Translations under genes and position numbers: made by a program | Part shown: positions 20,646-58,318 of the stretch, in pieces | Layout of the letters: each line of letters starts with the position of its first letter | How positions within the stretch are numbered: position 1 is the first letter of the stretch | Source: Amoebophrya sp. A120 | Taxonomy: Eukaryota > Protista > Dinoflagellata | DNA length: 64,000 nt | NCBI GenBank assembly: GCA_905178155.1 | Contig: CAJINV010000017.1 | Location: forward strand, 1,472,269-1,536,268 | Direction: 5' to 3' | The notes under the pieces: model-generated | Seen by the model: only the letters and a program-made list of their open reading frames with translations | What the model was told of the DNA's origin: nothing | The model's database searches: none

Positions 20646-21139
20646 GCACCACAAGACAGAGTAGCAGACGCGGTTATGCTAGTTTGAACGCGAGGACTTT
20701 TTTTACGTTTAAAATTGAACTTACCGCTTTGCCCTTGCTGAAGAGCGCAGGGCGCTTACCGGAAGTGTTTCGTCAACTACTGGTCTTAGTGTTCATTCTT
20801 GGTCCGTGAGTCTTGGTAGATGCACACGGTGGCGGCCAGGACTTTTTCCATGAAAAACGCGAGTGGAGTTGATCGGTCTTCAGGAATGTGTCGCGCATTT
20901 TGCGCATTGTTTTTCTGCCACAGGCTGCGCCGACCCGGGTCGGTTTCGTGATTGAGGCGCGCGAGCAGGTGCTGGCGCGCGGATTCCATGCGCCGCCTCT
21001 TTCTTGCGTGACTATCTTGAAACTTTAGTGCCTTTCCTGTTGATTCGTGAAGCAAGACTGGTTTCTGTAGAATACAGGGAGACGCCGCTTCCTCCGCACG
21101 AAAGGTCGAAAGCACTAACAAGTCAGCCGTACCGTCAAG

Positions 21140-24100
21140 ATGGAAAAAGCCATAGTGAATCGGTGGAACGACTTCGACCCCCTCGAGGAGGTCATATTGG
21201 GAATCGCGGATGACGCCTGCTTCCCGCCGATGGAGCCCGCTTGCCAGTCCGAATTTAACGACCAATACACGAAATACGGTACAAGCACATGCTGCCTTTG
21301 TTTGTCATGTGGAAAGAACCCGATGAATTTGTATCCGGAAGAACTGGACCGCAATCGATTTTTTTTTCGAGTGCCTCTGCAAGCACAAAAAATGTGATAA
21401 ATTGCCTTGCAGCTCACCACGCAGGAGCAGTGACTAACATAGTGAAGATGAAAATCACAAAGAATGAAGGTTCTTTCATGAAATGTTACCAGGTGCCAAG
21501 ATGAGCCACCCCTTCTCGGAGTATTTGCCGTGGCCAACAGGACCCAAGCTCAAGCGCTTTATTGACGGCGCAAATAAGGAGCTTGAGGGTACAACTTCCG
21601 ATTCTGGTTTTTCGAAACAAGTGCGACAAGGGTATTCGCTACCGGTCAGAAATGCAACATCTTCTTTCATTTTCCGTATTCCATTTTGTCGCCTCACGCT
21701 TGCGAAGATGAAAAGTAAACTCGTGAGTTCGTTCATCTACCCAAAATAAAAGGCATGAAGGACGTCCTGGAAGGCGAGGGTGTGATTGTGAAGAGGCCAG
21801 ACCGCAAGTTGTGCAACTTCAATGTCCAGACAAAAACGCCAGACTTCGAGTCACCAAACCAGTACTGCGTCGTGTGCCCAAGAGACGTCGTGATGACCGT
21901 CGGTATAATTGTCGGCGTTGCAGGACAACTGTTGCTGTTCTTTCTGATGGGTTGTTCGTGCATGACACTGTACTGCTGAGGTTTGCATGATGGAAAGATA
22001 ATTTTTTATCTACACGTATATAGTAATTGCTGCTGGTGCAGCACTTCATCTTTCAAGCTCACTAAATACATTTTTTTCCACAGGTAACGAGATCGTGGAG
22101 GCCACGATGTGCAAGAGAAGTCGATTTTTTGAGTACCGACCCTTCCGAACGTTGATCCGGGAATATTTCGACGCCGACCCCCGGATGATCTGGACCGCGG
22201 CACCAAAACCCATGATGGGACCGGACTCCTACAACACAGACTTCTGGAACTGGACAGTCGAGGAAAGGATTGAGAGGATGCACAAATACGAATACTGCCT
22301 GTCGGAGAAGGAAGTATGAGAATGAGTTTTTTGTTTGCAGCTTGCCATGTAGTGCAAATCGCCGCACTACAAATCATCATATTGCGTCGCAGCTTTCGCA
22401 AAACAAAAGCAAAACCGCCTCATCTCACTTCTATCGTGTCAATGTCCCAACATCGAAACTTCTCAGATAATGTTCGACGCTGCGGACTGCCTCCTAATTG
22501 GAAACATGATGTTCGTGCAACAGTCTATGGTCACCAATCTCGCCGGAATCCGATGGTTGAAGAGGCATTTCGCGCCAAAGGGAATTCAGGTATAGAACTT
22601 TTACAGGGGTGGGCCCTCTGATGATTTTGTGCTTTTTTCGTCCTCTTGGAGTGCACAGAGCTCGTGTAAAAGCGCTCCTTACTGATGTTACTTGACATGA
22701 GCAAATTACGAGCAAGATTTGGAATACTCAATACTAAGGTCCACACCCTGCACTTTCCCTATGACCTCTACCCATCACACACCGACTGCACCTTCGTCGC
22801 CGTGAACGGGCACACTGTGTTGACAAATCCGGACAGGCTATCCAAGGAAAAACTGTGTTAGAGTAGGTGCTTGGAGTGACAGCATGACAACTTTGTTTTG
22901 CATGACAGAGAAAGCCTGTCGCGCACACCTGGAGGGCGCAAGCCTCGTACCATACCATACCATGCACAGCTGGCACCTGAAAACGCATATGAAAGACGAT
23001 TTCATGGCTGAATAGCATGACAAATGTAAGTGTATTGCATTATCTGCATCACGGACTTACAGTTGCGCACTTTTTTTCTCGCATACAAGCCGGTGGTGGA
23101 AGAGGAAGTGAAAATCTTCAAGCAGAATGACTGGAGGCTGGTACTAGACGAGATGGTTTGAAATTTCTAATGCGTCACACGAATGCAAAAGAAATTTGTA
23201 TTGCGTCACACGAAATGTACGATATTTATGTTTATCAGGTCGATGTGCCCTACTACACGACCGACAAGGAGCACCCGCCCATGTGCCAGTCTTCCAGGTG
23301 GCTCTCTATTTATCCTGCGTAAAAACGTCCCCAAGCCCAACCCAGAGTCAAAATGGGAATTTTGGTTGTCGCGCAGGATTTGCTTCTAGACAGAGCAACA
23401 GATTTTGGTCCTCGCGCATGACAGGTGTGGAATCGTCGTCTACTTAGTCGTATCTGACTAGTGCTGTAGCCTCACGAGAAATTGATGAAATGGGTCAGCT
23501 TATCCTGATGTATGAGATGGAGAGGATGACAAAGTCCCAGACAGCATTAGAAAATGCGTCTCATGGGGCTGCGGATGACACACATGCAAAGTATGCAGAT
23601 CTGCATGAGAGCTCTGCGGTAGGGACGTTTACGTTTTTCCACACGATACTGCGAACCTGTTCTCCATCACGCCAAACAAAATCGTCTGCGAGGAGGGTTT
23701 ATGGATTGCAAAACGATCGCGCTAGAAGTGGGAATCGCATCACAATATCTTTTGCCAGATTCAACAAGAGAACAAACGGCGTTTGTCATGCAGAATCAGG
23801 TACATACAAAATCAAAACAAATGTTATGCAGGGTTGCAATTAGTACGAGCGCGATGGTTTTGCACAGGATACGGCGAGAAGCCGCTGATCAACTATTTGG
23901 AGGGTGAGCTCGGTTTTGACGTCATTGGCGTGCCGTACAGACAGGTAGAAAAGTCATTTTTCATGCATCACAAAAATACGTATCGTACTTCACAAGTGGG
24001 ATGAAAGTTGGGTTTGTATTCATGCTGATTGAGGTGGAGGATGAAAAAATCTGTCGTTCTTGCAAGACAGCTGCGCATCAAAACTAGGTAATTATCCGCA

Positions 24101-24244
24101 AAAAAAAAAAAGGTCTTCGAGTTCGGTGGTTCCCTGCATTGCTCCACCTGGGATGTCCGCAGAACGGGCGGCTGTAAGGATTTTTTCCCGAACCGCGAGG
24201 ATATTGAGGACGTGGGCTTGCACAACCTCACGGACCTGCCGTAA
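21140..24244 (+). CDS. Amidinotransferase (glycine amidinotransferase-like), multi-exon
   Basis: VNRWNDFDPLEEVILG, CPRD, FDAAD, HTDCTF, NPDRP, WLSMN and GGSLHCSTWDVRR motifs. It contains seven GT-AG introns plus three introners. Confidence 0.92.
22839..23085. mobile_element. Degenerate introner (247 bp)
   Basis: TAT...ATA ends with weak TIRs; TSD CAGGC/CAAGC; several GCATGACA motifs. Removal restores the conserved NPDRP. Confidence 0.8.
23311..23648. mobile_element. Introner related to family A (338 bp)
   Basis: Left end TATCCTGCGTAAAAACGTCCCC; right end GGGACGTTTACGTTTTTCCACACGATA; decayed TSD CTATT/CTGCG. Removing 23310-23652 restores WLSMNL. Confidence 0.88.
23700..23871. mobile_element. 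Introner family E (172 bp)
   Basis: TIR TATGGATTGCAAAACGATCGCGCT / AGCGCGATGGTTTTGCACAGGATA; decayed TSD GGGTT/CGGCG. Confidence 0.85.
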
Positions 24245-26294
24245 GGAATAAAGCGAAAATCTTCACGAGGTGGAGAAAAAGAAATATAAAATCGAAAAAA
24301 ATAAGTATATGATAGATTCAAAATGGGAGACGATGTGCTGGAGGTGTAGAAAGTAAAAAAGATGACCTCGGCATGATCTTCAAGGAAGTTACTCAACTCG
24401 TTTCAGGCATAGTTTATTACAATTGCATGTTGAAGAAGAACAAGAAATTTACATCTTTATCGACGTAGTAGTTCCCTCGAAATTTAAAGGACTGCTGCAT
24501 CAGAAGATAATTGGATACAACGTCGGCGTACATAGGTTTCCTCGGTGTCACCACTCAACAAATAAATGCACGACTCGCTCGCTTGTGCCGGCGCTTATTG
24601 TGTCTTAAAAAAGCAGCTGTTGTTGAAAAATATACGATATTATGGAAATAAGAGCACCGCGCACCGGCGACCGATAGAGAAAAAAGGTTTCAATACGATT
24701 ACTGCATGTAGTTTGATCAATTTTTTAATCAAACAAACCAGAACTACTAGAACTCGGTCGGTATGGAAGCCGACGCCATGCTCAACACAACTATACCCAA
24801 TTGCGAAAAAAACCTCGTCGCACTGATAAGTATCTAGTTCGCCTAGAAGAAGCAGCAAGCAAAACTCCTATTAGTGGAGTTGACAACCACGGAAACTACT
24901 TTTTTCTTGCACAGCAAGCTTGCAGAATTCTACTGTCGATGAAGATACTGAACGCCGAAAAAAATAGCCGCGAGGACTCAAGCCCGAAGCCAGAAACGAT
25001 GAGCATACGAGAGCGCGATATCAATACCAGTATTGTCAGTCGTATTTTCTTGCCCTGCTACATCTGCCCTTTTGCAACCGAAAATTGGTAGTACAGAAGA
25101 TCGTCCTAGTAAAAAGCACTATAGACAACGTAAAGCATCGCACGTATACACTCGCCGAGCTTGCTAGAGGATCATCTTGACTCTTGTTGCACCTTGCCAG
25201 CCTGTACATTGCAAACGAAAGCAGCTACCTCGTCGCACTCGTAGTATCTGTATCGAGCGCCAGCGCTAGTTCTCTTTCTGCTATTTGGCGCAATACAGGT
25301 TTCTCCTGTATACGGTCACGTAGATGAAACAGAACAAACTAGGATGACCATGACGCGGATGTTACCGAATTATATTTCGACTCGTCTACAACTGTCGTCC
25401 TTCCTGAACAACTAATTGATGACTTGCTATACTACTTCTTGTTAGTACAACACTACCAAGCCTCTCCTCCGTAGTTTATCACCGCATAGTCACGACTTCA
25501 TTTACGACTTGCTCTATCGGAAAATCAAATATTCTTACCAACTACTTCTGCTAAACTACTGACACTCATTGTTACTTTGCTCAGGCCAGAGCTCTGTTAT
25601 CGCCAGAGAAAGAACTTCGGCACCACGATTGATACTATCCTTTCACTAATCTACTGCTTCTTAAATATTGTGCTGCACGGGTAGCAGCGATTATTACGTC
25701 ACTATCTTCCACTTCAACACCGACGATAAAATTGTCCCTGGATTTTGCGCTGTCGTATGTTGCAGCTAAAAATCTTCTATCATTTTCATCGCATCATGAC
25801 TGAACAGAAAGAGAGCCACGACATTGTTGTAAATCGCCAAAGAGGGCGGCCCTCGTATGGGATCCAGTTCTTGGCCCAACAGAGCAGGCGTCGAGCCTGC
25901 CGCTGTTGACATCGCCTCCGTTTTGTTCCGCGAGAAGAACTACATCAACCTTCTTCCCCCATGCTTGGAATTGGTGAAGCAGATGTAAAGGAGGACAAAA
26001 AAAAGAGGATGTAATTATTTTCGATTCTACCTTCATCTCAGCGACAATTTCCATAGGGTACGTATTGATCTTTTTCGTGCCTTAAATATTCCTCTCCTGT
26101 CTGTTCTATGTTGACCATGACAAGTGTAAGTGTGTGTTGTACATTCCTTATGTTATTGAGAGATGTTGTAGAGCCGGCGGTCATGATCTCGAGACGGATT
26201 GGGTTCCGTGCTTCTTATCTATACCATAGCTTTTGAGATTTAACTCGACGAGTTGCTGCAGTTATTCGGAACATCATCAATCTCCATCATCCAA

Positions 26295-27470
26295 ATGGCC
26301 GCCATCGAGTTTCGGCGCGCCAACTTCAATCTGGAAACTGCGGTAGATGCGGACGTTAGCGCCCCTCTAAAACTCGAGCTCACCTTTGAGGTTCTCGACA
26401 TTTTGCCAAACGCCGTGGAGATGAAGCTTTCCTTTCTGCCGCCGGTAGATTTGGGTAGTTCCGACGACGAGGAGGATGTTTCCGAGGATTGTGAGGGCGC
26501 TGGGAATAACGCTGACGAGGACGACGACGATGTTGAGAATAACAAGACCGAAAAATCTACTGCGAACAAAAGTTCCAAGAAGCAGAAAGCGATTGACAGT
26601 AAAACCCTTTCGATTTTCGTCACCAATCCGGACGAGCAGATCCTGGACGAGATCGAGTGCGGTCCGTTCCAACAGAAGGGCAAGAGGTACGGCGTTCTCA
26701 AACGTTACATTCTCAACTGTTTACATGAATTTGTAATGCAAAACTGCCATCAGGATCAAGGTACTCCGTATGACAAACTGTGCACAATCTTAACAGCATG
26801 ATCATCCGTTCCAAATTTGTAATGCAAAACGCGCAATCTTCTTCCCGCTCTCACTTTTACTGTTCTTGCGTCACAGATTCACTGTTCCGTCACAGATTCG
26901 CGCAACAGTTGAGACTGTAACGTTTGACACCCCCATAAGAGGAGGGTGATTCTGGAAGGCCAGGCCCCGGACTATGACAAAGTTCCGGAGGCGTCGAAGC
27001 TGGACAACGGCGGACTTTTGCTGACTGCGACCTATAAGGAGCAGGAATTCTACCGCTGCGGCTGGTTTCTCTCCCACAATTTCAAGGACCAGAAAGTACA
27101 GCAGGAGTGGCAAGAGACGGGGAAACGCCCACTGACGGTGGATTTCAGGAAGGATTTGCTGCGCCGGGTGGATTTCGAGCACCCAATAGAAAACAGAACG
27201 ATAATCGAGTGGGCGGAGGAACAACCGGAGAACGGGTTGAGAAAAAACGCCGGAAAAATAAATAACGCCAGCAGCGGGCATAATAGCTCCCGATCGAGCG
27301 AAGCGAGCGGCTCGTCTGGTGGTATTCACAGTGGGGAGCAAGAAGAAAGGCACGCGACAAAAAGGCGGAGAGTTCAGGAAGGCGGCGGAAGGGAAAAAGA
27401 CCGTCCGTCGAGCGGCAGGTCCAGAGAAGGTGGTGGAGGGAAGAGTAAGCCGAAGTTTATCATTGAGTAA
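26295..27470 (+). CDS. ASF1: Histone H3-H4 chaperone ASF1-like (intron 26687-26941)
   Basis: LKLELTFEVL, DEQILDEIECGP, APDYDKVP and LLLTATYKEQEFYRCGWF motifs; an acidic insertion and a disordered tail. Confidence 0.85.
26688..26937. mobile_element. Introner family D (250 bp); its boundaries are GT-AG
   Basis: TIR TACGGCGTTCTCAAACGTTACATTCTCAACTGT / ACAGTTGAGACTGTAACGTTTGACACCCCCATA; TSD AGAGG. Confidence 0.9.
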
Positions 27471-28351
27471 AAGAAATTTTTTCATCACATGACCGTTGTT
27501 AATGCGAGCAGGCACTAAGACTACTAGTATTTTCATTTTGTTTTTGAGCGACAGCTGCGAGGAAGATCTCACCGCTCCCATTGCGCGACTTATATATAGA
27601 GTTGCGGACGTGGTCCTGGTATGGTTGTTGATTGGAAGACATGTTCATAAGAATAAACAAGAATCTGCAGAAATAAATCTGCAACGGCCCTCCCAACGAT
27701 CTCGATCATTCACGAAGATGAGGATCTATGCTAGAAATAATCGGAGCTTGTTGCGATCATGTTGCGTAGTTACCACAAGAAGCGTTCTTGCAGCTGCTAA
27801 ATAAAGTTCATTTTCGCTGTGCTAGCGCCGGATCTTTACGACAAACAAACCGGATCACTAGAAAGAAGCTCATCAAATTTAGGCCGCATTTTTTATCCGC
27901 TACTTCGTCACTCAGTACCGGACGCGGAGAACAGAGACGCGGATGCTGTGTGTGGTACTGTTGAATCTGGACACGAAAGCTGCAACGTACTTAATGGTCT
28001 TGTTGTGCGATCCCCTATATAGTCTTGGTACCGGAATTACAACCCTGTTTCTTCGTACAACTTCAAGTTTCCAACCACGATAACGATAACAACACCAAAC
28101 CAGGGCAATTATTCGGTGCTTTCGCTGCACATGCAATTTTACAGTAAGTAGAGATCAGTCTGCCGATCTTTATCTATCAGACCCTACGAAAGACAAGGTC
28201 TCATTTTTGATCTTTCCTTCGCCTTCCTTCAAACTTTTTTCCTACATTACTGATTCATTTCCGTGATCTTTCGCCACGACCGCGCGAGCGATCTACTATT
28301 TACGAATTTAACAAGAGTTAGACTTTGAAGAACAGAACCCAGCAAGAAAAA

Positions 28352-39773: not shown

Positions 39774-42700
39774 ATGTTATTTGCCGGACCAGCGCGGTCC
39801 CTCTGGACGGGAACTTCGAGTTCCTCCACCTGCACCTCCTGGCGGACAAAATCGAGGCCGCGCACAGGCTCGGGAACGAGCTGCTCTCCAACATTTTCAT
39901 CTTTTTCCACCTCGACTAGAGGTGGTTCCACCGGCGGACCGAGGAAAACGACCTGGGCGGGTCAACAGGGCGGGAGTGGAGCCTCTAGCGAGCATCAGCA
40001 ACACTCAGCATCTTCATCCACTTCGCGGCCCTTTGGTGGAGCGGCTAATTATAGAGGGTGGAAGAGGATAAATCATACGATAAGAAACTTCTCATCTACA
40101 ACATCTGCTGTCGTCCATCCGTATTACTACGCTCGGGCGCTGACGTCACAAGACCTGAAGAAGTTCAAAAATGTAAATGACGACCGACATCCAGGAACAA
40201 TAAAACCACCTCCTCCGATAATCTTTTTGAAAAGAAGGGGCTTTTCCACCTCCGCAGCGACGACACCAGATGGCGGAACAACGGCCCCAGGAACAGCGAC
40301 GACGACCGCTACAACCTCTTCCACAGAGGGCGATACTATTTCTAATTCAGAACCATCAAAACCGAAAGCCCTCAGTTCTGACCCCGGGTTTTTCGTAAAA
40401 CCCCCGACTCGGAACCAACTCCGGCGCGTCTTCATTGCATCCGCGATCCCCTTCATCGGTTTTGGTTTCCTGGACAACTTTCTGATGATCCTGATGGGCG
40501 ACGCGATCGACGCGAGCCTGTGCGTCAAATTCGGCTTTTCCACCATGGCGGCAGCGGCCCTCGGGAACACGTTTTCGGACGTTTGTGGCGTCTTTTCCGG
40601 GGGCGTGATTGAGGATTACGCGCAAAAGCGGGGGATCGAGATGCCGGCGTTGGACAGTGAGCAACTGAAACTAACGTCCGTGAAAACGTACCAGTACGGC
40701 GGTTTTCCCCAAAGACAATTTTTTTTTTTCGATCCAATTGTAAGCAGGGCGGGCCCTTCGCAACCGACTTGCGCCGCGAATGGCCAGACCGAGGCGGAGG
40801 CGCGCGCCCCCCCGGGTGTGTTGCTTTATGGAATCCAAGAGATTGCGTAGCTAGTGGCGCCAACGAACTGCTTTGGTAGCTCCTCGAGAAGTATGCGCGC
40901 AATTTAAGAAAGGCCTCTGCGGCTCGGAGTCCAGACGCAGCCGGCCGCCCCTCCTTCAGGGCAGAGCAGCTTGCTGATGTTCTCCATGACCGACCCCAGT
41001 GTGCCTCTCTTTCTATCCTACAGGCTGAAAAGCGCAACGCCCCGCCCGGCTTTTTGGGGCGCAAGCAGCTCGAGCCCCGCGGGGCAGCGCCCGGGGCAAG
41101 GCGCCCGTGCCAGACCCGCCCCCCGGCCACCTAAGGCTCCCACGCGATGCCCCTTGCCGTGGACCTGTGTTCTCCACTTGAGGCTGGCCGGCACCGTTTC
41201 CCTGAGTGCATGCTCGGACACGTTGGCGAGAAAAAAAACGTATGCTGGGGATTTCGGCCCTAAGCGGCTATCTACGCACTTGCGGCCACCAAAACGGGCA
41301 CCAGAAACGTCCCGAAAGTGGACGCATGCACGACCTCCAGGGAAGCGGCGAGGCCGGGGCCTCAAAAGTTGGGCGCGGCCTTCAAAGTCCGGCGGCCATG
41401 TGGGCCCGGGCAAGGGGCCAGCGCCGACGCCCACAAATCAACACTCGGCACGGCAGGCGGGGCGTTGGATCGCTAACAGAATAACAGCGCCCCGTCCGAG
41501 GTAGCAACGCAGAGCACGCTTTTCCAGCAAAATGCCCGCAGCCAAGCAAGCGCGAGCAGTGCGGCGGGGCCGCGTTGCAGTAGTCTACACGCGGATCGGG
41601 CCGAAATAGATACACACATCCACAAAGCCTGCTGCCCCATCAGCTCAAGCGCTGACTTTTGAGCGCCGCCATCTCGCTTGCTCCTTTGCATATGTAACAG
41701 CATCAGAGATTATCCTTGAAGAAGATCCACTAGCGGACACTATCCGGTCGGGCTGCGCAGGCGCAGCCGGCGGCCGTGTTGTTGCATCAGTTCAAAAAAA
41801 TTTTTTTGATTTGGGGAAAACCGGGGTAGTGGGGACAGTTTTTCCTAACGTAGAAACTAACGTCCGTGAAAACGTACCAGTACGGCGGCCAGGCCTGGTA
41901 TGGAAGCGTCAGGTTTGAAATCGTCAAAGTTGAAATAATTTGTAATGCATAAAATGCATGACCCGAGGCACGTATGTTGCAGAGCAGGGAAGTGAGGCCG
42001 ATTCTAAGCCTGTTTGGGGTTACAGCTCGAGCTGCTAAAGTAGCATGAGAAAATCGCTCTTCTTTGCCTAAAAAGCATGACAAACTGGATTTTGGGACCA
42101 ACGAAATTTGTCTTGCGCCACTTGGAAACTGGGTTGTCTAACTGGTGTCCGTTTTATGCATGACAAATTATTTCAACTTTGTCGATTTCAACTCTGACAC
42201 ATCCATACCTGTGGGATCGTTGTCGGTTGCATCCTCGGGATGTGCCCCCTGCTCTGGATGGACCCGGACGCGACGGAGAAGTTGAAAAAGGAGAAAACCA
42301 AAATCGACGTGTTGAACCGGGTTGTCACGGACGTGAACGATTTACTGAACGCAGAATATCATATGTAAAAGCGTCCCCACGACCCCAGAGGCAAATTGGG
42401 AGCTTAGCAACAGAAATTCAGAAGTTTTGGGAGCCACGCATGACAAGTTGCAGCCCGTAGTGCAGTGCATGTTAGCAAGTGCAACCGAATCACAAACCCA
42501 TCGATCTTCTTATCCTGTTTACCGCATTACAAATTCCAAACCACGGCGACTGGAAATAATGCCTCTCATGGAGATGCGCATTACATATCTTCGTGTAATC
42601 GCAAATCTGCATGACAGCTATGTTGGGGTCGTGGGGATGTTTTTACATAGGATACAGAAGCGACGTTCATCATGATGATCGACCGCGAGCGCGAGGAGCT

Positions 42701-45700
42701 GTACACCGTCGCGACGGAGAACATCCCGGAATTCATATCCTGACTAAAAACGTCCCCACCCCAGAGTCAAGATGGCGATTTTGCAACACAAACCTAGGAG
42801 TTATGGGAGTCACGCATGACAAGTTACAGTCCGTAAGGTAGTGCAAGTTAGCAAGGAGAGCCGCGTCACAAGTCGATCTGCTGATCCTCTTTACAGCATT
42901 ACAAGTTCCCAAACACGAGTGACAATGCCTGTCATGGGGTTGTGCGTCACAAATGCTGCTGTCATGGCAAATCTGCATTACAACTCTGGGGTGGGGATGT
43001 TTTTACTCAGGACAAATCCGCGCGAAACTGAACGAGGGCGTGATGGGCCACTGTGCGACGACGAAGAAGTTCATCAACATTCCGGACCTGAAGCAGTCCG
43101 AGTTCTTCGACCCGAAAAGGCACACGAACTACCGGAATACGGGGAGAGATATCAAATCCGTGTTGTGCATGCCGGTGCTGAATCTAGCCGAAGTGGAGGG
43201 CGTCGACGGGGAGCAGTCCTCGGTCATCGCAGTGGTCGAAGCCGTGAACAAGAAAGCAGACACGGGGTTCACGCACAAAGACGAGGAAGTGATTGCCGCG
43301 ATCTGCTCCCATATAGCGACCGCGCTCGCGGACGACGAACATCGAAAGTTCAAAAACGTCATCGACATGTGTCGGGCACAGATTGTGCTACGGGAGCAAT
43401 ACACGACGATGAACCCGTACTGTTTTTTTTTTTTATTTGCTTTATCGGTTTTGTTTGTGGTGTAAAGAAACTCAAACTACGAATAACAAGAAGTGATGCA
43501 GCTGCGATGGTTTGCATTTATTTCAGATGCAAAAATAAAACCTGAGATAAAAAAAAAACAGCATTGCATGTCGTAACTGCCACTTGCTCGTCCTGCAAGA
43601 ACCTGCAATACGTAGCAGTATTAGCAGTAAAGCAACTCTGTTCATCTAAGATATCATTTTAACACAGTGTCATCGAGCAGAGGCAGATGAAGCTGTTCGA
43701 AACGCTCATGGAAGAAACCAGCGCGATTTTAAAGGCCGAGGCGTCCCATTTGCTCCTGATCGACCCTGTGAGACAGAAACTGCGAACGAAGGTCGGACAC
43801 GTCTTGCCGCTCAGGGAGTTCGCGCTTGATGAGGACATCATGGGAAAAGTGTGCCGGAGAGGTAAAGAAGTATGTTGACACAAGCTGCGCAGTGGTTTCA
43901 AGATTGTTGCATTTGCAGCTACTTCTTTATGGCGCCGTATACTATCTCAACGTCGAACTATCTCAAATTTTTTTACCTCAACTCTATATAGCTACCTAAA
44001 GTAGGTAGTTTATGTAGATAGTGAATTATATGCAAGTAGATAACTGTTTTGCATGACAAATGAGCTATATTAGAAGAAATCGTCTGGTCCCGCTCCGCCG
44101 CCCTGTCAATTTCCGGAACCCCTTTCGACCCCGTCTGTGAGGGGCCCCCCCGGAAGGGGGGTCGGCGAGGGGGGTAGCTGAGGGGGGCAATAATAAGCTT
44201 CCGCCGATGCTAGGGCGCACTGAAAAAATGCAGCTTTTTGAGCACCTTTCAGGGGTTCGCGGAGGGGGTGTCCGGAAGGGGTCATGAGGGAAGCAACAGG
44301 ACTAGAAAAAATCGGCGGAGCAGGACCGGACGATTTTCATTGATCTAACTTAATCTGTCACGCCAAAAATCTAGCTACATAAGCATCATGTGTTAGCTGA
44401 ATAAACTAGCTACTTGAACTACCTATTTAATATTGGGTTGAAAAATTTTGAGATAGTTGAGCGTTGAGATAGTATACGGCGCCATATTCTTGGTATCGAC
44501 GACGATCATAAGTCGCAGACTGCTCCGCTGGAACCATCGCTCATTTTTTTATGAAGATATCACTTGCACTTCTGAAATTGCTATAGAATAGAATTTTCTT
44601 TCCGCAAATGGAATACATTTACACATCCTCAGGTCAACTGGTGAACTCGACGGATTTCCAGCGTTCCAAGTACTACAAGCCCGAGAAGCACGACAACTAC
44701 CTGGGCACGGGGCTGGAAGTGCGGACAAGATTGTGCGTCCCGGTTATCTATGCACTGCAAAAGTATCGTATTAGTATTAATTGCAATACAAATTCGCTCA
44801 GCATGACAAATTCTGACTAATGGAACTTGTCATGCTGATTTGCTTTGGCAACGAGATTTGTAATGCATAAATGCAATTACTACGAGTACGATACTTTTGC
44901 CGAGGATGTTATCAACACGGAAAGGCACGTGATCGGGTGTTTGGAAGTGATCTATCGCAAGAAAAAAATGTTTCAATGTGAACTTGTGATGCAGAAAATG
45001 AAGCACCAGAGTTGTTCTCTTGCTACACCTGCAAGACATTGGATTTCTAAGCGTGTTGTCTGTTGGGAAACGCGCATGGCAAATAATTCTGAAACTTGTG
45101 ATGCAGATCTTGCAAAATCATCACAGGGAAACAGTTTTTTCGTGGGATATGATCAACAAAAAGTCCAATGAGGTTTTCAACATGCACGACATCGAGCATT
45201 TGTTGAACATCGCCGGCCACGTCGCGCTCACACTGGAGGGTCACGGGTCTTCCATCAAGAAGGTTTTGGCGTTGGCGCAGGACCAACGGCAGTTGATGCA
45301 GGACAGCAAGGACTTCAAGCGCACCGCGACCAGGCAGCTGTCCGGGCCGTTGATGTTACAGGTGGAGCCGAGTGAGGAAGACGCGAATCTGGACCACGAT
45401 GATTCTTGGGACGATGAGATGGTCGCGGCGAGCGAGCACGTGGTGGACTTGATGGCCGGGCAAGATTTGATCAACAAGGGGGACGCGACCGCGCACAAAA
45501 TGTCTTTAGGCGGTCACGCGAAGAACGAGGCGCACCTGAAGCAGAAACTGCGGAAACTGCAGAAAGAGTCGGACCTCGTGGTGCACTTGGACCGGGCCGC
45601 GGACCTGCCCAATATGGCGTTCTCAACTGTTACACTCTCAACTGTTACATGAAATTTGTCATGCAAGAACAGCAGCAACCGAAGAGGCAAGATTGCTGCT

Positions 45701-47010
45701 TTCGCATCACAGATTTGGCAGAGATGTGCGTCCTGTTTAGCCCTTCGGAGATTTGTCATGCGTGGCCGCTTGATCATCTGGAGGCTTAAGGTAGTTTTGC
45801 ATGGCAAATCCGTGTAACAGTTGATAATGTAACAGTTGAGAACGCCATACCAAAAGCGGATCTGTTCGGTACCATCGATCCCTACATCACTGTATCACAA
45901 GAAGAAGTGTTAACGTTAACGGTTTTCACAGATTGCAGTCATGCATCACAAATGTAGTTAAATATGCATCACAAATGTAGTTAAATATGCATGCTATGCA
46001 TGACAAATTTAGGCACGTTTTGCTTTTGTGATGCATTTCTGCATTACAAATTCCGTTAACGTTAACACTTTTTCCTGTGATACACTGTCAGCATCGTGGA
46101 GGGAGATCCGAAAGCACCAAATTACGACGGGCCAACGAAGGGGCGAGGTAAAATTTTTGATAGCCTTTATGTTTGTTTCGTAAAATCGAGCGCAGCAGTG
46201 AGAGTCGTTACAACAGTGTGCTTCGAAGTATTTATGGTTTTAACCATTTTTTGAGTTGTTTCTCCTCGCAACACAGCAGGTGAGATGAATTATCTGAATC
46301 AGTAATCTGCAAAACTGCTTGATAAAAAGATACATACATGAAACGTCGAACTGCAGGTCACGCGTCGCCGCTCGGGCACGGAAAGTCGGTTCCGATTAGG
46401 CAGAACCAGAACCCGGTGTGGAACGAGAAAATCAACATCGCTTTACCGGAGGAGCTCGTGAACGATTACGAAAACCTCTACCTGCACATCAAATATCCAC
46501 TGCAAAAGTATCGCACTCGTATGAATTGCAGATATGCATAGCAAATCTGGTTTCCTACCCAAATCTGCATTACAAATTCCAAGTTTCTTCCTGATAAAAT
46601 TTGTCATGCGATTTATACTAGTACGATACTTTTGCAATGCATATCAAGCTGTGGGACTGGGACTTCATGAAATCAGACGACATGATATCACAAGAAAAAG
46701 TGTTATACGTTAACGGTTTTCACAGATCGCAGTCATGCATCACAAACGTAGCCCAATATGCATGCTACGCATGACAAATTTTTACACGTTTTGTGATTCA
46801 TTTTTGCATCACAAATTCCATTAACGTTAACACTCTTTCCTGTGATACATGATCGGGGAGGTGGTTTATCCGTTAAAACGCGTTCTGCAGGAGGACACGA
46901 TGCAGATGACGTCGTTTCCCTTGACCGAGATAAAAAACAACCCGGACGAGTATGACTTGAAAAAATCCCGCATCTGGCTGAAGTTCTCAATCGCGAAGAA
47001 AAAGCAGTGA
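39774..47010 (+). CDS. TMEM65-domain + GAF + GAF + C2 fusion protein (~14 exons)
   Basis: TMEM65 motifs IPFIGFGFLDN, STMAAAALGNTFSD and GIVVGCILGMCPL; two GAF domains (SVLCMPV..AVNKK..FTHKDE; LCVPVI..EVINKK..F..HDIE); C2 (DLPKADLFGTIDPY, NPVWNE, LWDWDFMKSDDMIGE). Inferred exons: 39774-~40700, ~41854-41897, 42212-42355, 42659-42734, 43019-43416, 43668-43861, 44633-44747, 44913-44951, 45154-45611, 45854-45891, 46087-46147, 46357-46492, 46648-46684, 46852-47010. The start is uncertain. Confidence 0.8.
40701..41822. mobile_element. GC-rich 1.1-kb non-autonomous TIR element inside the TMEM65 domain
   Basis: 13-bp TIR GGTTTTCCCCAAA / TTTGGGGAAAACC; no credible ORF; bracketed by a 36-bp exon duplication (40667-40702 = 41853-41888). 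Confidence 0.7.
41899..42207. mobile_element. Introner family C (309 bp)
   Basis: TIR TATGGAAGCGTCAGGTTTGAAATCG...; TSD CCTGG/CCTGT; homologous to 59028-59334. Confidence 0.93.
42357..42654. mobile_element. Introner related to family A (298 bp)
   Basis: TIR TATCATATGTAAAAGCGTCCCCACGACCCCA / TGGGGTCGTGGGGATGTTTTTACATAGGATA; TSD CAGAA. Confidence 0.93.
42736..43014. mobile_element. Introner family A (279 bp)
   Basis: Family A TIRs and length; decayed TSD ATTCA/AATCC; interrupts the first GAF domain. Confidence 0.92.
43928..44486. mobile_element. 559-bp MITE of the introner class nested in the canonical intron 43862-44632
   Basis: Long TIR TATGGCGCCGTATACTATCTCAACG...; TSD TTCTT; additional internal inverted repeats around a GC-rich core. 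Confidence 0.92.
44749..44908. mobile_element. Introner family E (160 bp)
   Basis: TIR core GCAAAAGTATCGTA; TSD TTATC. Removal gives CVPVI-NTERH. Confidence 0.9.
44953..45149. mobile_element. Introner (197 bp)
   Basis: Ends TATCGCAAGAAAAAAATGTTTC / GAAACAGTTTTTTCGTGGGATA; TSD TGATC. Removal gives LEVI-NKK. Confidence 0.9.
45613..45849. mobile_element. Introner family D (237 bp)
   Basis: TIR TATGGCGTTCTCAACTGTTACA; TSD CCCAA/CCAAA. Removal gives DLPK-ADLFG. Confidence 0.92.
45893..46082. mobile_element. Introner family F (190 bp, with an internal tandem duplication)
   Basis: TIR TATCACAAGAAGAAGTGTTAACGTTAACGG; TSD CACTG. Confidence 0.93.
46494..46643. mobile_element. Introner family E (150 bp), opposite orientation to 44749-44908
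   Basis: TIR TATCCACTGCAAAAGTATCG / CGATACTTTTGCAATGCATA; TSD TCAAA/TCAAG. Removal gives LHIK-LWDWD. Confidence 0.9.
46686..46847. mobile_element. Introner family F (162 bp)
   Basis: TIR TATCACAAGAAAAAGTGTTA; TSD CATGA. Removal gives DDM-IGE. Confidence 0.93.
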
Positions 47011-49507: not shown

Positions 49508-52500
49508 ATGACAAGACGGGCCGCGGCTTCCCTTTTTGTCCTCGGAACTGGCGTCACAGCGCTGGACGAAAGCTCACCAGCAATGATGGGCATGGACAGG
49601 GGGAATATGAACTTTAAGGTGACCTGAGTAAAAACGTACCCACACCAGAGTCAGGATGGGGATTTTGCAACACAAACCTAGGAGTTTTGTGAGTCACGCA
49701 TGACAAGTTGCACTCTGCAGTGTAGTGCAGGTTAGCAAGTGCAGCCGCGTCACAGATTCGTCTGCTCATCCTGTATACAGCATCACAAATTCCGAGACAC
49801 GATGGGAAATGGCTCTCATGGGGATGCGCATTACAAGCCTTGCTGTCTTTGCAAATCTGCATTACAACTCTGGTGTGGGTACGTTTTTACTCAGGATATA
49901 AGGTGACCTTGATTGAGGACCGAAAACACGACCTGGCGCTCAACATCCACAGTCAGAGAAAAACACCCTCAGCGGTCTCCTTCGCGGGCAAAGTAAGAAC
50001 ATACGGCGACCAGGCCATCGCAAGTCAGAACAAGCAGGACACCGGGGCGTTTAGTTACATCAACAGGTAGAATTAATCTCGTACAGTGGTGAGAAATATT
50101 TTTTGTGACTGATGTGACGAGTTGTAGACCCTCAACATAATCTCATTTGCAGATTCAGAAGCGGCGGAGGGACGAACATACAGGCGTCATCAATACCGAC
50201 TCCACATAATAAATTCGAGTTTCTTCATAGAAAAGTCTTCATCAGCTTTCTATCATGCGACGAAGGCAAAGAAGATGATAAAGAGTTGATATTGTACGAG
50301 CACGACGAACCGCGGAAAGCGTCAAAGACGATGATCTGCTGAGCACGTTGAAATAATATATATTACAATCTCAATCGCTACTGTCAACACAGGCTACTGG
50401 GTCTGTCCGCCGCCGACTGCGACAAGGAAGACCCGAAAGAGTGCCTGGGGGACGTTCTCGGGCTCGACCGGGACTACTACCAATCTTACGGCCTGCACAA
50501 GAACGAGACGCGCGGCACTTTCGAATTGCTGACGGATAAGCAGAAGGAGGAGAAAATGTCCCTGGAACTGATCACCGCCAACATTCTGCAGTACGCGCGA
50601 GGTATCGCCGAGGACAAGAACGACGGAAAGGCGATTCGCGACGCCGTCATCACCGTACCAACGAATTGGAACCAGAGGCAACGGCAGGCATTGCAGGACG
50701 CCGCAAAAATTGCGGGCTTGAACAGCTTGTTGATCCACGAAACCCCGGCGGCGGCGGTCAACTTGGCGATGGACTGGGCCAAGGACACGACGGAAAACGT
50801 CTTGTAATATTTATTCGACAGAAGTTCTTGCTGCTTTAACACACTCATTATTGGACGACCACCTGCTGGTCAATTGATTTTTTCCACTCAGTACAGTGAT
50901 AGATTCTCGCGTCACCAGCAGCAGTTGGAGCATTTTAATAACTGTACTTCTATCTTCACCAACCTGATCAGGTTCTACAACATGGGCGCCCGCACCACGG
51001 AAGTGTGCATCGCCGAGTTTTCCCCCCGTCAGGCTGGTATGGTGGCTGGTCGCACCACGCCCGCCATTGTCATGAAGGGCTGCGTGCATGACGAGAGAAT
51101 CGGTGGCCATTTGGGGGATATCGCCATCGCTGACGAGATGAAGAAGCGATTCATCAAGAAGTACTGAATGTTTTCTTGCGACTTGTGTGATAGATTTGAA
51201 ATATGCGCTCCTTGCAGTCTGTGTTGACGCTGAAAATGAAATTGAAAACGCTCGACCATACCTGGCACGCGCACGGCCACGAATGGTACTATAATGTTGA
51301 CAGCTCATGATTGATTTCCACAGGTTCCCGAAGCTTTCTGACATCGAGAAGCACCCGCGTGCGCTGCGAAAGCTGTTGGGCCAGGCACTGAAGTCCAGAC
51401 ACCAGCTGTCTGCCGGGAAGGACACGTTTTTCTCCGTGGAAGGGTTGTACGAGGAGAAGGATTTTCAGACGAAAATGACCCGGGCGGAATTTGAGGACCT
51501 GGAGATGATGAAACAAATGTGGTCCATTCTCACCGAACCGATCGACGCCGTGTTGGCGAAGGCGCAGATGACATTGAAGGACATCGATCTCATGGAAATC
51601 GTCGGAATGGCCTGGCGCATGCCGAAAGTGCAAGAGGTACTCTTATCAAAAACGACGATGATGTCAGGATAGGTTATTTCTGCACTTTGTAGTTTTTGAT
51701 TTTCGTGCTTGTCCTGGCTCATTCTCATGCGCAGTTTTTGACATTTTTCTTTTTGCATGGCTGGGAGTTCGATGATCCCGAGCATGTTCATAGTGATCTG
51801 TTTGCTTTGAACAAAGAGATGAAATGAATTTGTGATGTAAATCATCATCATCAACTACCTGCTCAGATCCTGAACGACTACTTCTCGAAAGCGCAGGAAG
51901 CGCGGAAGGGCAAGGACCAGTTGGTCCTTGGACAGCACCTGAACGGAGACGAGACCTTCGTCCTTGGTGCCTCTTTGTTCGCCGCCAACCACTCCAGGGC
52001 CGTGCGACCGCCGAAGAGGGTCTTCTTCCAGGACACAACCCACGATCACAAGTATAATAAATTTCTATTTGTATCATGATTATATGTACTTAGCTTTGCA
52101 TCGTTGACGTTGCCCATGAGAAATTTGCTCTTTGTTTTTTCAACGGCTAGCACTTCTGCAGATGGGTACACGAAAGATAAGAAGAATTGAACTCAGCACG
52201 AAGAAACAGGATTCTGATCCAGCTTTTTATTTCAACATGACCAGCACAACTTTGATTTTTCGCCCAATTCTTACCCGCCCTACATCAGCTACACCATTGA
52301 CCTCCTGTCCCTCTCCGATGAAACGCCGATCAAGAACACCACCGATATCGCTTCCCTCGGGTCCCGCTATGGCGTGAAGAAAAAAATCACGGTGAGTGAC
52401 GCGAAGCAGGATTTTACCATTAAGCTCTTCGAGAACGGCAAATGGCTGACCAGCTGGACGATCACGGGCCTCGAGGAGGCCATCGAAAAAGACTACGCGC

Positions 52501-55439: not shown

Positions 55440-58318
55440 GCGATTGTGATTGATGATGAAAAATCCACCTCTGCGGGGAAGGAACGACAACGAGAAATAT
55501 TAAACATTGCAGAGCTTCTTGTCGCGTGCCGCGATGAACATACAAAATGAACCACATTTCTCACCACTGGAGGGACGTCAACCGCGCATCAGCAAATCTT
55601 CGAGCAGTAAGATGACAAGATAAAAACTACGACTCCTCGCTGAACAATACGAACAACAGCGGGCGGTTGTAACAGGAACAGGGCGCTGCACGAGTAACGC
55701 ACTACACGCCTCGATCTCTGATATGTGGAATTCCCTCTGGGGTGTGAATGTTAAAGTTGAAACGAATATGAAACAAAGACAAGAATGTAACAGCAGCAAA
55801 TCCATTTTGTACACCCGTTCTTAAAGACAAATGACATTATTTTCAACGAAACTTTTCAACCGTTTGGTATTTTGATTCTCAGAAGACAATGACAAAGAAA
55901 TATAGCAAGAGCCGCTGTGCATGACGACGGCTTTTTATCGAAGATATATAGCAGCACATAGATGGCTACAGGAGAATGACATAGCAGCCATTCCAAGATA
56001 GCACAGATGCTGTCTATATGATAGTACTACAAGAACGAACAAGACTTCATTAGCTTTTTTTTTTTAGAGCGACAGCCCCCTACACTTGGAAAGTTTCCTT
56101 TTTGGTAGCACCTTCTAGCGACCCCACCCTTTCCCGTGGCATGTCTCCCCATGATTTTCCGCTCTGTTGCTCAGAAACCTTTGAGAATGAACCGGGTCGC
56201 ACGAGAAGAAGCCTAGAGTAGCAGCAAAAAAAAGGATGGATCATGATGAGCGAATGCGTTTGGCAAAAAGAAACGCCTGCACAGCTTGCACTTTTCGAAG
56301 TTTTGTGTTCCGCTACTTCCCCTTGCAGCTGATCCGAGATGTAGAGAGTGTGGAAATACCAGCCACCTGGCTGGCCCCTCCATGTTTTTGTTTTTTGAGC
56401 CATTGTTAATCCTGTCGGGTGCATATCAGTGAGCAGCGCCCTGCCCTCGCTTATGGTGGGGCATGGCGGCCGCCCGTTCCCGCTGTCAGGGGGGGCGGCA
56501 GGGCGCAGCATCCGGCGGGGGCGCAAATTGGCCGGCCCGCGATTTGGCTCGCTGGCTGCCTCCCAATCTCCCGAAGAAGGACCCCGCAACGCCTGTGCGC
56601 GCGTAGATCGATCGCGGCCGCCAAGGAAGACGCCAACCCGGGCGCGGGCTCCCTGAGTCTTCGCTCGCCCTTGGCCGACTTCCAGATCCAGGCCGGGGCT
56701 ACCGGACTAGGCGGCCGGCTTTGCCGCCTTTCGGGGGGCGGTCGGAGGGTCCGCGTGCCCATTGGGCAGGGGCGCGCCCGGCGATTGGCGGCACCGGGCC
56801 CGCCCCTGTTGATTCAGCAGCGAGGGCGCAGCGCCCGGCTTTGGCGGAAATTAAACGGCCGGCCCGCCCCCAGATGCAAGCACGTCTGCCCCCCTCCTGA
56901 AGGGGGGCCCCGCTGTGATTGCCAGGGCCGGCGTTGTGGTCGGTGCCGGCCGGGCGGTGCGGGGCGGCGCCCGCCAATTAAGGCGATCACCTGACTCCGC
57001 AGGCTTGCAGTGATGCGCATGGATGGCGTCGCGATAGCAGTACTAAACTCCGACAGCGTAACCACGCAAAGCGTGTGGCTCCGCGCGAATGCCATGCGAT
57101 TTGTTTCCATCGTTGCGGCTATCTCAAGCACCCCACGAACCTGCCGAAGTTGTCGCGGAGCGCCTTTCTTCAATGTTCGCTCGCAAAGTTGCCACGCGCG
57201 CGAATTTGCCGAGCCGCCCACGAGGCGCTGACTGTGTGGGCGGGTGTGCCCGGATGGTCGCGGTAGCAGTCTGCGAGTGGAGTGTCTCGAGTCAGTGGCG
57301 GCAGCCGAGCGCAGAAAGAACTCCGCCGACTGCCTGCGGCCCACCCGCGCCACCCCTAAAAGCAACGTAGTTCGGCCCTCTTCATTTGGCCGCAGATTTG
57401 CAGTCATATACCAAGCAGGAGGGGGCAAAGAATTACGCGGGCGATCTCGGGGGGGGGGGGGGGCGCCGCAGGCAGCCAGCCAAGCTAGCCGCCCCAATCA
57501 CGGCCGCGGGGCGGCGCGCTCCATCCTTCCGCCCCGGCCGTCGTGCGTGCGCCCGAACGACCTCGCGCCCGGCGGGCGCAGACGCTCGGCCCGCCGGGGC
57601 CTTCCGGGATGCAGGGCGGGGGGGGGGGCGGGTGAGGAGGGCGCCGCCCCTACCCCCGGCCCGCCGGCCGCCCCTCGGCGTTTTATTTTATATCCAGCAC
57701 GCAGCACCGCAGGCCCCAAAGTGCGTGCTTGGGGGTCCCGTGACCCACCTGCCTAGTGGGCGCGGGTTGTTTGTCTAATACATGGCCAGGCGGTGCTGGC
57801 GCGGCGCAAGGAAGTGGGGGGGGGGGGCGTCGCCGCCTTTCTTTGCCGGGCTGGCAGGCAGCGCCAGACCCGCCCTGGCGCAAGCATTCGACCTAGGGGC
57901 GATTCTTGTGTCACTTCTTGAAGCCGGCCCGCCCATCAAGCGGTTGCGGCCGGCCGGGGCGTTGTGTGTGTGTCGAGCAAATGGGCCCGTGCCGCCCGCT
58001 CGAGTAAATCAATTAGTCAGCAGATAGCCCGGCTTTGAAGGCGTGACCCAGCGGGGCCCCTCCCTCGTCTGTTCCTTTGCATTAATTCTTGTGAGCAGAA
58101 GTACTTCAGTTTAGTCTGGCAATAGATGACTGTCGTGTATCGATCTGCTTCTTTTGGTTTGCGCACAGGCGACGAAGTTCTGTTGCCAGTAAGTATCATG
58201 CTGTCGCTCAAGAACGACATGAAAAGCATCTTCTTCACAAACTTGCAGTGGACACAACCATCGATAAAAAGGCTAGGTAAGAAGACCCGCCCTTCTAAGA
58301 TCAAATGTGGTGAACAAA

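Follow-up and report, generated by a model that had tools for sequence, protein, structure and literature searches.

The amidinotransferase-like gene and its transcript

The stretch of the Amoebophrya sp. A120 genome analysed here (64,000 nucleotides, hereafter the window) carries on its forward strand an L-arginine:glycine amidinotransferase-like gene. One coding exon of this gene is interrupted near position 23,300 by an element that begins with TAT, ends with ATA and lies between two diverged copies of its target site. The subject of this work is the position of the cuts by which this element, and others of its class, are removed from the RNA. The gene was assigned by searches with single exons: exon 22086-22313 matched the AGAT structures 1JDW/1JDX in the PDB (E 2e-13), and the last exon, coding for the C-terminal sequence FGGSLHC...DVRR, matched HsvA/StrB1/SxtG. 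(The solved relatives of this gene include AGAT, StrB1, HsvA and SxtG of the saxitoxin pathway; its presence was unexpected for a parasite of dinoflagellates.)

Splicing was read from Logan contigs aligned to positions 21100-27099 of the window (6,000 letters); they belong to runs X1 and X3, both from one sample. The RNA label of the two runs is a guess of the tool, and their complementary DNA (cDNA) nature was judged from the 11 introns removed. Runs X1-X4 (probable RNA) contained 55-58% of the sequence words of 21500-28000, two untyped runs (probably DNA) 94-98%. A single contig, with a depth of 234 in X1 and 99 in X3, extends over the entire amidinotransferase gene. Of the ten stretches that it skips, seven are GT..AG introns and three are elements with terminal inverted repeats (TIRs). 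The seven conventional introns begin with G|GTAC or G|GTAT, one of them with GTAG.

Splice register at the diverged target-site copies

On the + strand, the upstream coding exon near 23300 reads ...QVDVPYYTTDKEHPPMCQSSRWLS and then CTATT|TATCCTGCGTAAAAACGTCCCC...; about 340 nt downstream of CTATT the sequence is ...GGGACGTTTACGTTTTTCCACACGATA|CTGCG, followed by AACCTGTTCTCC..., which codes for NLFSITPNK.... The terminal triplets of the element are TAT (23311-23313) and ATA (23646-23648). Its 5' arm, TATCCTGCGTAAAAACG from 23311, and the reverse complement of its 3' arm, TATCGTGTGGAAAAACG, show that the arms form a degenerate inverted repeat, and in the minimum free energy (MFE) fold they pair with each other as the terminal stem, from which a long hairpin extends. 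The 5' arm also pairs with the 3' arm of the neighbouring element (79%), so the two elements belong to the same family. The target-site duplication (TSD) has decayed to 2/5 identity (CTATT / CTGCG), exactly as an earlier reading made from the sequence alone had described it at 23306-23310 and 23649-23653. The two copies differ, and the register can be read, since the intronic TSD positions appear to have drifted while the exonic ones were kept.

In what follows, k is the number of letters of the left TSD copy that are kept in the RNA; k = 4 corresponds to the 4|1 register, in which positions 1-4 come from the left copy and position 5 from the right one. The sequence-only reading had predicted this register from the protein, with ATG in the putative family motif WLSMN, where other registers encode I, T or A. 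The contig bears this out: at the joint 23309>23653 it skips 343 letters (TT..GC) and leaves no ambiguous letter that could be placed on either side, so k = 4 exclusively. CTAT+G yields ATG (WLSMN), and the registers giving I, T or A are ruled out by the RNA contig. The same was found at the second nonconventional intron, where retention of EEGEKP had been foreseen. The joint 23698>23876 skips 177 letters, again with no ambiguous letter, so that k is 4 exclusively and GGGT+G continues into ...EEGEKP; k = 5 would produce a stop codon and k = 1-3 GGGCG. A different or variable register, such as one giving WLSIN or WLSAN, would have contradicted the prediction; in the contigs, both junctions that tell all registers apart showed 4|1 only.

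Two further joints were compatible with this register and less informative. The joint 22836>23089 (252 letters skipped, two ambiguous) permits k = 3, 4 or 5, so the claim that 4|1 applies there stands as one of three choices. In a second contig the joint 26681>26937 has six ambiguous letters, with GT..AG at +5. Any k is allowed there; the 4|1 register gives the GT-AG intron 26687-26941, which agrees with the earlier proposal and does not single it out. At 49619-49902 the identical copies TAAGG/TAAGG likewise give GT-AG in the 4|1 register, as had been noted.

Two other sites were read from the protein of the next multi-exon gene. The NCBI A120 protein P0015 aligns exon by exon, at 100% identity, to positions 39774-47007 of the window. 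At the element 41899-42207 it reads ...YGGQACGIV..., in which Cys means k <= 4 and Trp would mean k = 5. At 42736-43014 it reads ...PEFRAK..., in which Arg corresponds to k = 2-4, Ser to k = 5 and EIR to k = 0-1; the distant relative P0008 shares PEFR at the matching position. (With an exon of this second gene as query, transcript or protein fragments gave no match within the length filter, and a search of representatives returned only another relative, P0001, at 67% identity, and not the A120 protein itself.) At 45613 and 46494 the TSD differences are synonymous (CCC/CCA and AAA/AAG) and the register is unreadable from protein, and the 200 kb flanking the window contained no new site with a protein-readable difference at TSD positions 4/5.

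Taken together, k = 4 fits all six sites, no other single k does, and none of the sites contradicts it; both junctions that discriminate among all registers are exactly k = 4. If registers were uniformly random, the joint chance of this outcome for a k = 4 stated beforehand would be, by our own arithmetic, ~(1/6)^2 x 1/2 x 5/6 x 1/2 = ~0.006. The intron ends at the sites read are arbitrary dinucleotides (TT..GC twice, CT..AG), as had also been claimed. Mutated terminal triplets are tolerated: two copies with altered 3' arms, ACA at 43012-43014 and ATG near 44901, are removed in frame in P0015, and the copy with the 5' triplet TAC at 26688 is still removed in the RNA. The coordinates are collected in Table 1.

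Table 1. Features of the window that bear on the splice register
Feature	Positions	Strand	Remarks
Host gene, L-arginine:glycine amidinotransferase-like	21140..24243	+	11 exons; 7 GT-AG introns and 3 nonconventional introns; joints of the spliced contig
Third nonconventional intron	22838..23089	+	element 22839-23085; TSD CAGGC / CAAGC
Exon ending ...SSRWLS + AT	23239..23309	+	last 4 nt (CTAT) are left TSD positions 1-4
Left target-site copy CTATT	23306..23310	+	mRNA keeps positions 1-4 and loses position 5
Intron as removed from the RNA	23310..23652	+	343 nt, TT..GC; N + element + NNNN; joint 23309>23653
Decayed MITE-like introner element TAT...ATA	23311..23648	+	degenerate TIRs; 5' arm ~23311-23332, 3' arm ~23622-23648
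Right target-site copy CTGCG	23649..23653	+	positions 1-4 removed; the exon begins with position 5 (G, 23653)
Exon (M)NLFSITPNKIVCEEG	23653..23698	+	sequence and spliced contig
Second nonconventional intron	23699..23875	+	177 nt, TT..GC; element 23700-23871; TSD GGGTT / CGGCG
TIR element TAC...ATA in the next gene	26687..26941	+	TSD AGAGG x2; 34-nt arms; 4|1 register gives GT..AG
Element in the TMEM65-GAF-GAF-C2 gene	41899..42207	+	TSD CCTGG / CCTGT; protein model P0015
Element with decayed 3' end (ACA)	42736..43014	+	flanks ATTCA / AATCC; protein model P0015
Element with mutated 5' end (TGA...)	49620..49898	+	TSD TAAGG x2; 4|1 gives GT..AG 49619-49902; from sequence only

A scan of JGI metagenomes for the spliced junction word returned 0 matches, and Pfam and PDB searches with the two short exons around the 23309|23653 junction, aimed at the WLSMN motif, returned none, the exons being too short for either. 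The V-ATPase subunit A gene (G000:C4:5446000-5455999, minus strand) contains two introns with diverged TSDs, whose differences either leave the protein unchanged or affect residues that are not conserved. These TAT...ATA introns have the flanks CGTGG/ACTTG and GGGCG/GGACG; in comparison with a human sequence one of them would indicate k >= 2, which was not counted.

The amidinotransferase transcript contig continues unspliced for ~1.6 kb beyond the stop codon (24244-25821) and departs from the window at 25821 (X1) or 25816 (X3) into sequence absent from 21100-27099. This extension could be a long 3' untranslated region, it could reflect another intron or a trans-joint, or the contig could be chimeric. 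The RNA-seq runs X11-X13, which date from 2026 and bear this species name too, gave no read on the 6-kb stretch, which is well expressed in the 2020 runs; they may come from another strain or consist almost entirely of host RNA. In the P0015 region, a 1.15-kb stretch (40667-41888) lies between two identical 36-bp copies of exon sequence (...KLTSVKTYQYGG) and does not have ends of the TAT...ATA type. P0015 contains the 12 residues of the duplication only once, so the intron takes out the stretch and one repeat, and its border could lie anywhere within 36 nt.

The element class in the window and in the genome

About 20 clean TAT...ATA copies with complementary arms were found in the window, almost all of them between identical 5-mers. 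The order TAT, ~7 variable nt and A-run recurs in more than 20 copies of the window. Their TIR families are TATCCTGAGTAAAAACG, TATCAAATGCAAAAATG, TATGGAAGCGTCAGG, TATCACAAGAAAAAGTG and TATGGCGTTCTCAAC. Over 264 kb, made up of the window and 100 kb to either side of it, 54 TIR pairs were counted, with flanking 5-mers identical at 5/5 positions in 25 and at 4/5 in 10. The expected chance of a 5/5 match is ~0.1%, and the element class lies far beyond chance. One 21-nt TIR word has 2,416 exact arms in the 115.5-Mb genome (genome size from PMC12005148, Table 1). In most copies the long hairpin of the MFE fold begins at U1/A-last. With lengths of 130-560 nt, TIRs, a TSD of fixed length, many near-identical copies and no coding capacity, the elements have the properties of MITEs (miniature inverted-repeat transposable elements): they are MITE-like non-autonomous TIR DNA transposons that make a 5-bp TSD. 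A TSD of this length would fit integrase-like DDE enzymes.

One young family was used to look at target choice. Arms with the prefix AGG (54) outnumber those with CCT (36), a weak excess of GT-AG-compatible (NNAGG) targets, which argues that there is no strong selection for such targets. Elements also occur elsewhere than in coding exons. The conventional GT-AG intron 43861-44634 contains a 559-nt TIR element (43928-44486, TSD TTCTT), so these elements insert in existing introns as well, where they need no special removal. At 60584-61155 two copies of the same family (261-263 nt) lie 48 nt apart, flanked by AGTTC/AGTTC and GAACT/GAACT, which are mutual reverse complements; their outer arms form a perfect 24/24 inverted repeat, and the pair could act as one composite element of 572 nt. 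Positions 56000-58000 are GC-rich (0.65 versus ~0.50 elsewhere), and both strands carry long open frames there.

Probable excision at fixed positions and its alternatives

The explanation that we consider best, and probably correct, is that the element at 23311-23648 is an old introner copy in a coding exon which is excised at fixed distances (-1/+4) from the element ends, its terminal dinucleotides being left unread. According to this scheme, a non-autonomous TIR introner of the TAT + 7 nt + A-run family would have inserted into the amidinotransferase exon and made a 5-bp TSD. The 5' cut would precede the first TIR base by 1 nt and the 3' cut would follow the last one by 4 nt, and the dinucleotides (TT..GC at 23310-23652) would play no part. 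The length removed would equal the element plus 5 nt, that is, one TSD length, so that any insertion with a 5-bp TSD is reversed in frame, whatever its flanks. Once the element was in place, drift would have affected the five TSD positions that are intronic (left 5, right 1-4), and the five exonic ones would have been retained. A hairpin formed by the TIRs may bring the two sites together and serve as the point of reference. The rule presumably holds for the whole element class.

Several points weigh against this explanation. The junctions that discriminate among all registers number only two, both in one gene and both from the Logan contigs of one sample. Contigs hide minor isoforms, and other registers may be used at a low level. 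The P0015 sites depend on a public gene model rather than on reads, and the raw RNA-seq runs X11 and X12, with zero reads on 21100-27099, provided no test from raw reads. The variability of 1-5 nt reported by Farhat et al. (PMC7789003) may be real rather than an ambiguity of aligners. Lastly, measuring from the stem and reading TAT predict the same outcome for every copy seen. The sequence-only reading, which had proposed a fixed register measured from the TIR stem, is partly supported: the register is borne out at the two decisive sites and compatible with four others, whereas fixity throughout the genome goes beyond two sites of one gene and one RNA sample, and in these data stem and TAT serve equally well as reference.

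The strongest competitor accepts the register and explains it differently: a U1-less spliceosome would read TAT as positions +2..+4 of a (G)TAY 5' splice site with a relaxed +1 G, the 3' site would follow at a set distance, and the hairpin would not act as a ruler. The conventional amidinotransferase introns start with G|TAY, and N|TAT could thus be the core of a 5' splice site minus its G; the conventional introns of the gene are also cut 1 nt before TAY/TAG, and NNAGG duplications turn the 4|1 register into a perfect GT..AG intron (26687-26941; 49619-49902). The genome contained no U1 match and at least 10 U6 genes, in agreement with the published analysis, in which no U1 small nuclear RNA was found and a nearly full set of spliceosomal proteins was reported (PMC7789003). 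Such reading is harder to reconcile with a 3' end devoid of any signal (GC, GC, AG, ...), with the 5' triplet TAC at 26688 and the 3' triplets (ACA or ATG) of two copies, both still removed in the P0015 model, with the lack of a strong excess of GT-AG-compatible targets, or with the analogous Euglena introns, which are thought to use separate machinery (PMC12501133). The arbitrary ends, the weak NNAGG excess and the tolerated triplet changes together speak for a positional rule that takes the hairpin as its anchor, and the TAT-reading account, although a serious one, appears to us the less probable. As to the machinery that would execute the -1/+4 rule, we lean towards a U1-less spliceosome docking on UAU at +2..+4, the alternative being a separate, Euglena-like machinery. 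A bolder form of the positional rule, which we regard as speculative and rather doubtful, supposes that A120 has a dedicated system for excision, which would need no particular terminal dinucleotides and possibly no spliceosome, measure -1/+4 from the base of any TIR hairpin and so take out exactly the element plus 5 nt, be tuned to the 5-bp TSD of the resident transposons and have converged with the Euglena code.

It is improbable that the register is not fixed at all, with cuts peculiar to each intron that selection on the protein maintains, and with a mere coincidence between the two decisive sites. The published description of the positions as variable, 1-5 nt from the inverted repeats (PMC7789003, Fig. 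3 legend and Fig. S23), and the presence of only two fully informative sites speak for it. Identical TSD copies, however, make aligners produce apparent variability of the published kind; k = 4 was compatible at all six sites and exact at both decisive ones, and a machinery without a rule could not excise exactly the element plus 5 nt at tens of thousands of unrelated targets.

That cellular mRNA keeps the element, and that the joints are artefacts of a reverse transcriptase switching templates across the hairpin and its direct repeats, or of assembly collapse, is very unlikely: a hairpin with direct repeats is indeed the classic setting for template switching, and the evidence consists of contigs, not raw reads, but neither decisive junction has an ambiguous letter, hence no microhomology for switching (for which reason template switching was rejected) and no 31-mer for de Bruijn collapse; once the element is removed, the frame is open again and codes for an AGAT-like protein, in a contig that also drops seven GT-AG introns, and the ~30,000 such introns (PMC7789003), if retained, would probably break host genes. 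Two other candidates were rejected. Excision from DNA of the ciliate type does not agree with the probable DNA runs, which keep the elements (94-98% of the stretch), only the spliced contigs being without the introns. A euglenid origin of the window is contradicted by the TIR grammar and by P0015, which indicate Amoebophrya.

Amoebophrya A120 and A25 have the most extreme non-GT-AG introns known outside Euglenozoa and tunicates. If true, the -1/+4 rule would provide for ~30,000 introns an exact model, independent of sequence, that gene predictors could use; it would explain how a transposon with a 5-bp TSD could invade coding exons harmlessly, and make the question of mechanism concretely testable. 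It would also mean that the logic of spacers counted from a hairpin, proven genetically in Euglena (2025), exists with other numbers in an alveolate, either by convergent evolution or as a general eukaryotic way of neutralising MITE insertions.

Comparison with published introners and other intron systems

The introner elements of A120 were described by Farhat et al. (2021, BMC Biol 19:1, PMC7789003). More than 60% of the A120 introns are non-canonical, and 29,850 of these are repeated introner elements, ~240 nt long, hairpin-forming and without conserved dinucleotides. Their inverted repeats begin with TAT, ~7 variable nt and then at least three A, and direct repeats of 3-5 nt lie across the exon/intron borders. 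The element at 23311-23648, with TAT, ~7 nt and an A-run, direct repeats and non-GT-AG removal (TT..GC), is an introner of this description: the organism and the elements are the same, and the direct repeats are here 5 nt. In the published account the inverted repeats are placed 1-5 nt from the splice sites, and the position relative to the hairpin is called variable or unknown (Fig. 3 legend, Fig. S23), whereas here diverged repeats and RNA locate the two cuts at -1 and +4 relative to the ends of the element. Literature searches, and later papers on Amoebophrya and introners, yielded no mention of a fixed splice register. Thus the element class is already published; what seems new is the rule of fixed cuts at -1/+4.

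Spliceosomal introners of Micromonas, Aureococcus and Polarella (Gozashti et al. 2022 and 2025; reviewed in PMC11282704) are likewise TIR/TSD transposons that become introns with a length of element plus one TSD. They carry or create GT/GC...AG and are recognised normally, whereas in A120 only NNAGG targets give GT-AG and the others splice equally in register. The two A120 introns without positional ambiguity end in TT..GC, and have neither the GT/GC-AG ends of U2-type introns nor the AT-AC ends of U12-type introns. A resemblance to the bulge-helix-bulge introns cut by tRNA endonuclease lies in the fact that RNA structure rather than intron sequence sets the cuts. A bulge-helix-bulge requires two 3-nt bulges with a 4-bp helix between them. 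The MFE folds of the A120 introns show instead one long hairpin, with both cuts at its base in the single-stranded flanks.

The closest likeness is to the nonconventional introns of Euglena (PMC12501133; Milanowski et al. 2014, 2016), which share a MITE-like origin, paired TIRs joining the ends, arbitrary borders and fixed asymmetric spacers counted from a paired motif, the 3' spacer being longer than the 5' one. The Euglena code, 5'-N3CDG-/-CH'GN5-6|R, in which a fixed 3 nt precede CAG and 5 (to 6) nt follow CTG, was shown by knock-in mutagenesis (Nomura et al. 2025, PNAS, PMC12501133). The numbers differ: the paired motif is CAG/CTG at +4..+6 / -8..-6 in Euglena and TAT/ATA at +2..+4 / -7..-5 in Amoebophrya, and the spacers are 3 and 5-6 nt as against 1 and 4 nt. 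Euglena prefers a purine as the first downstream exon base; here this base is G at 23653 and 23876, but C at 23090 if the register is 4|1. Euglena introns leave as circles, and Euglena belongs to a different eukaryotic supergroup. The A120 introns work like the Euglena code and are not members of that family.

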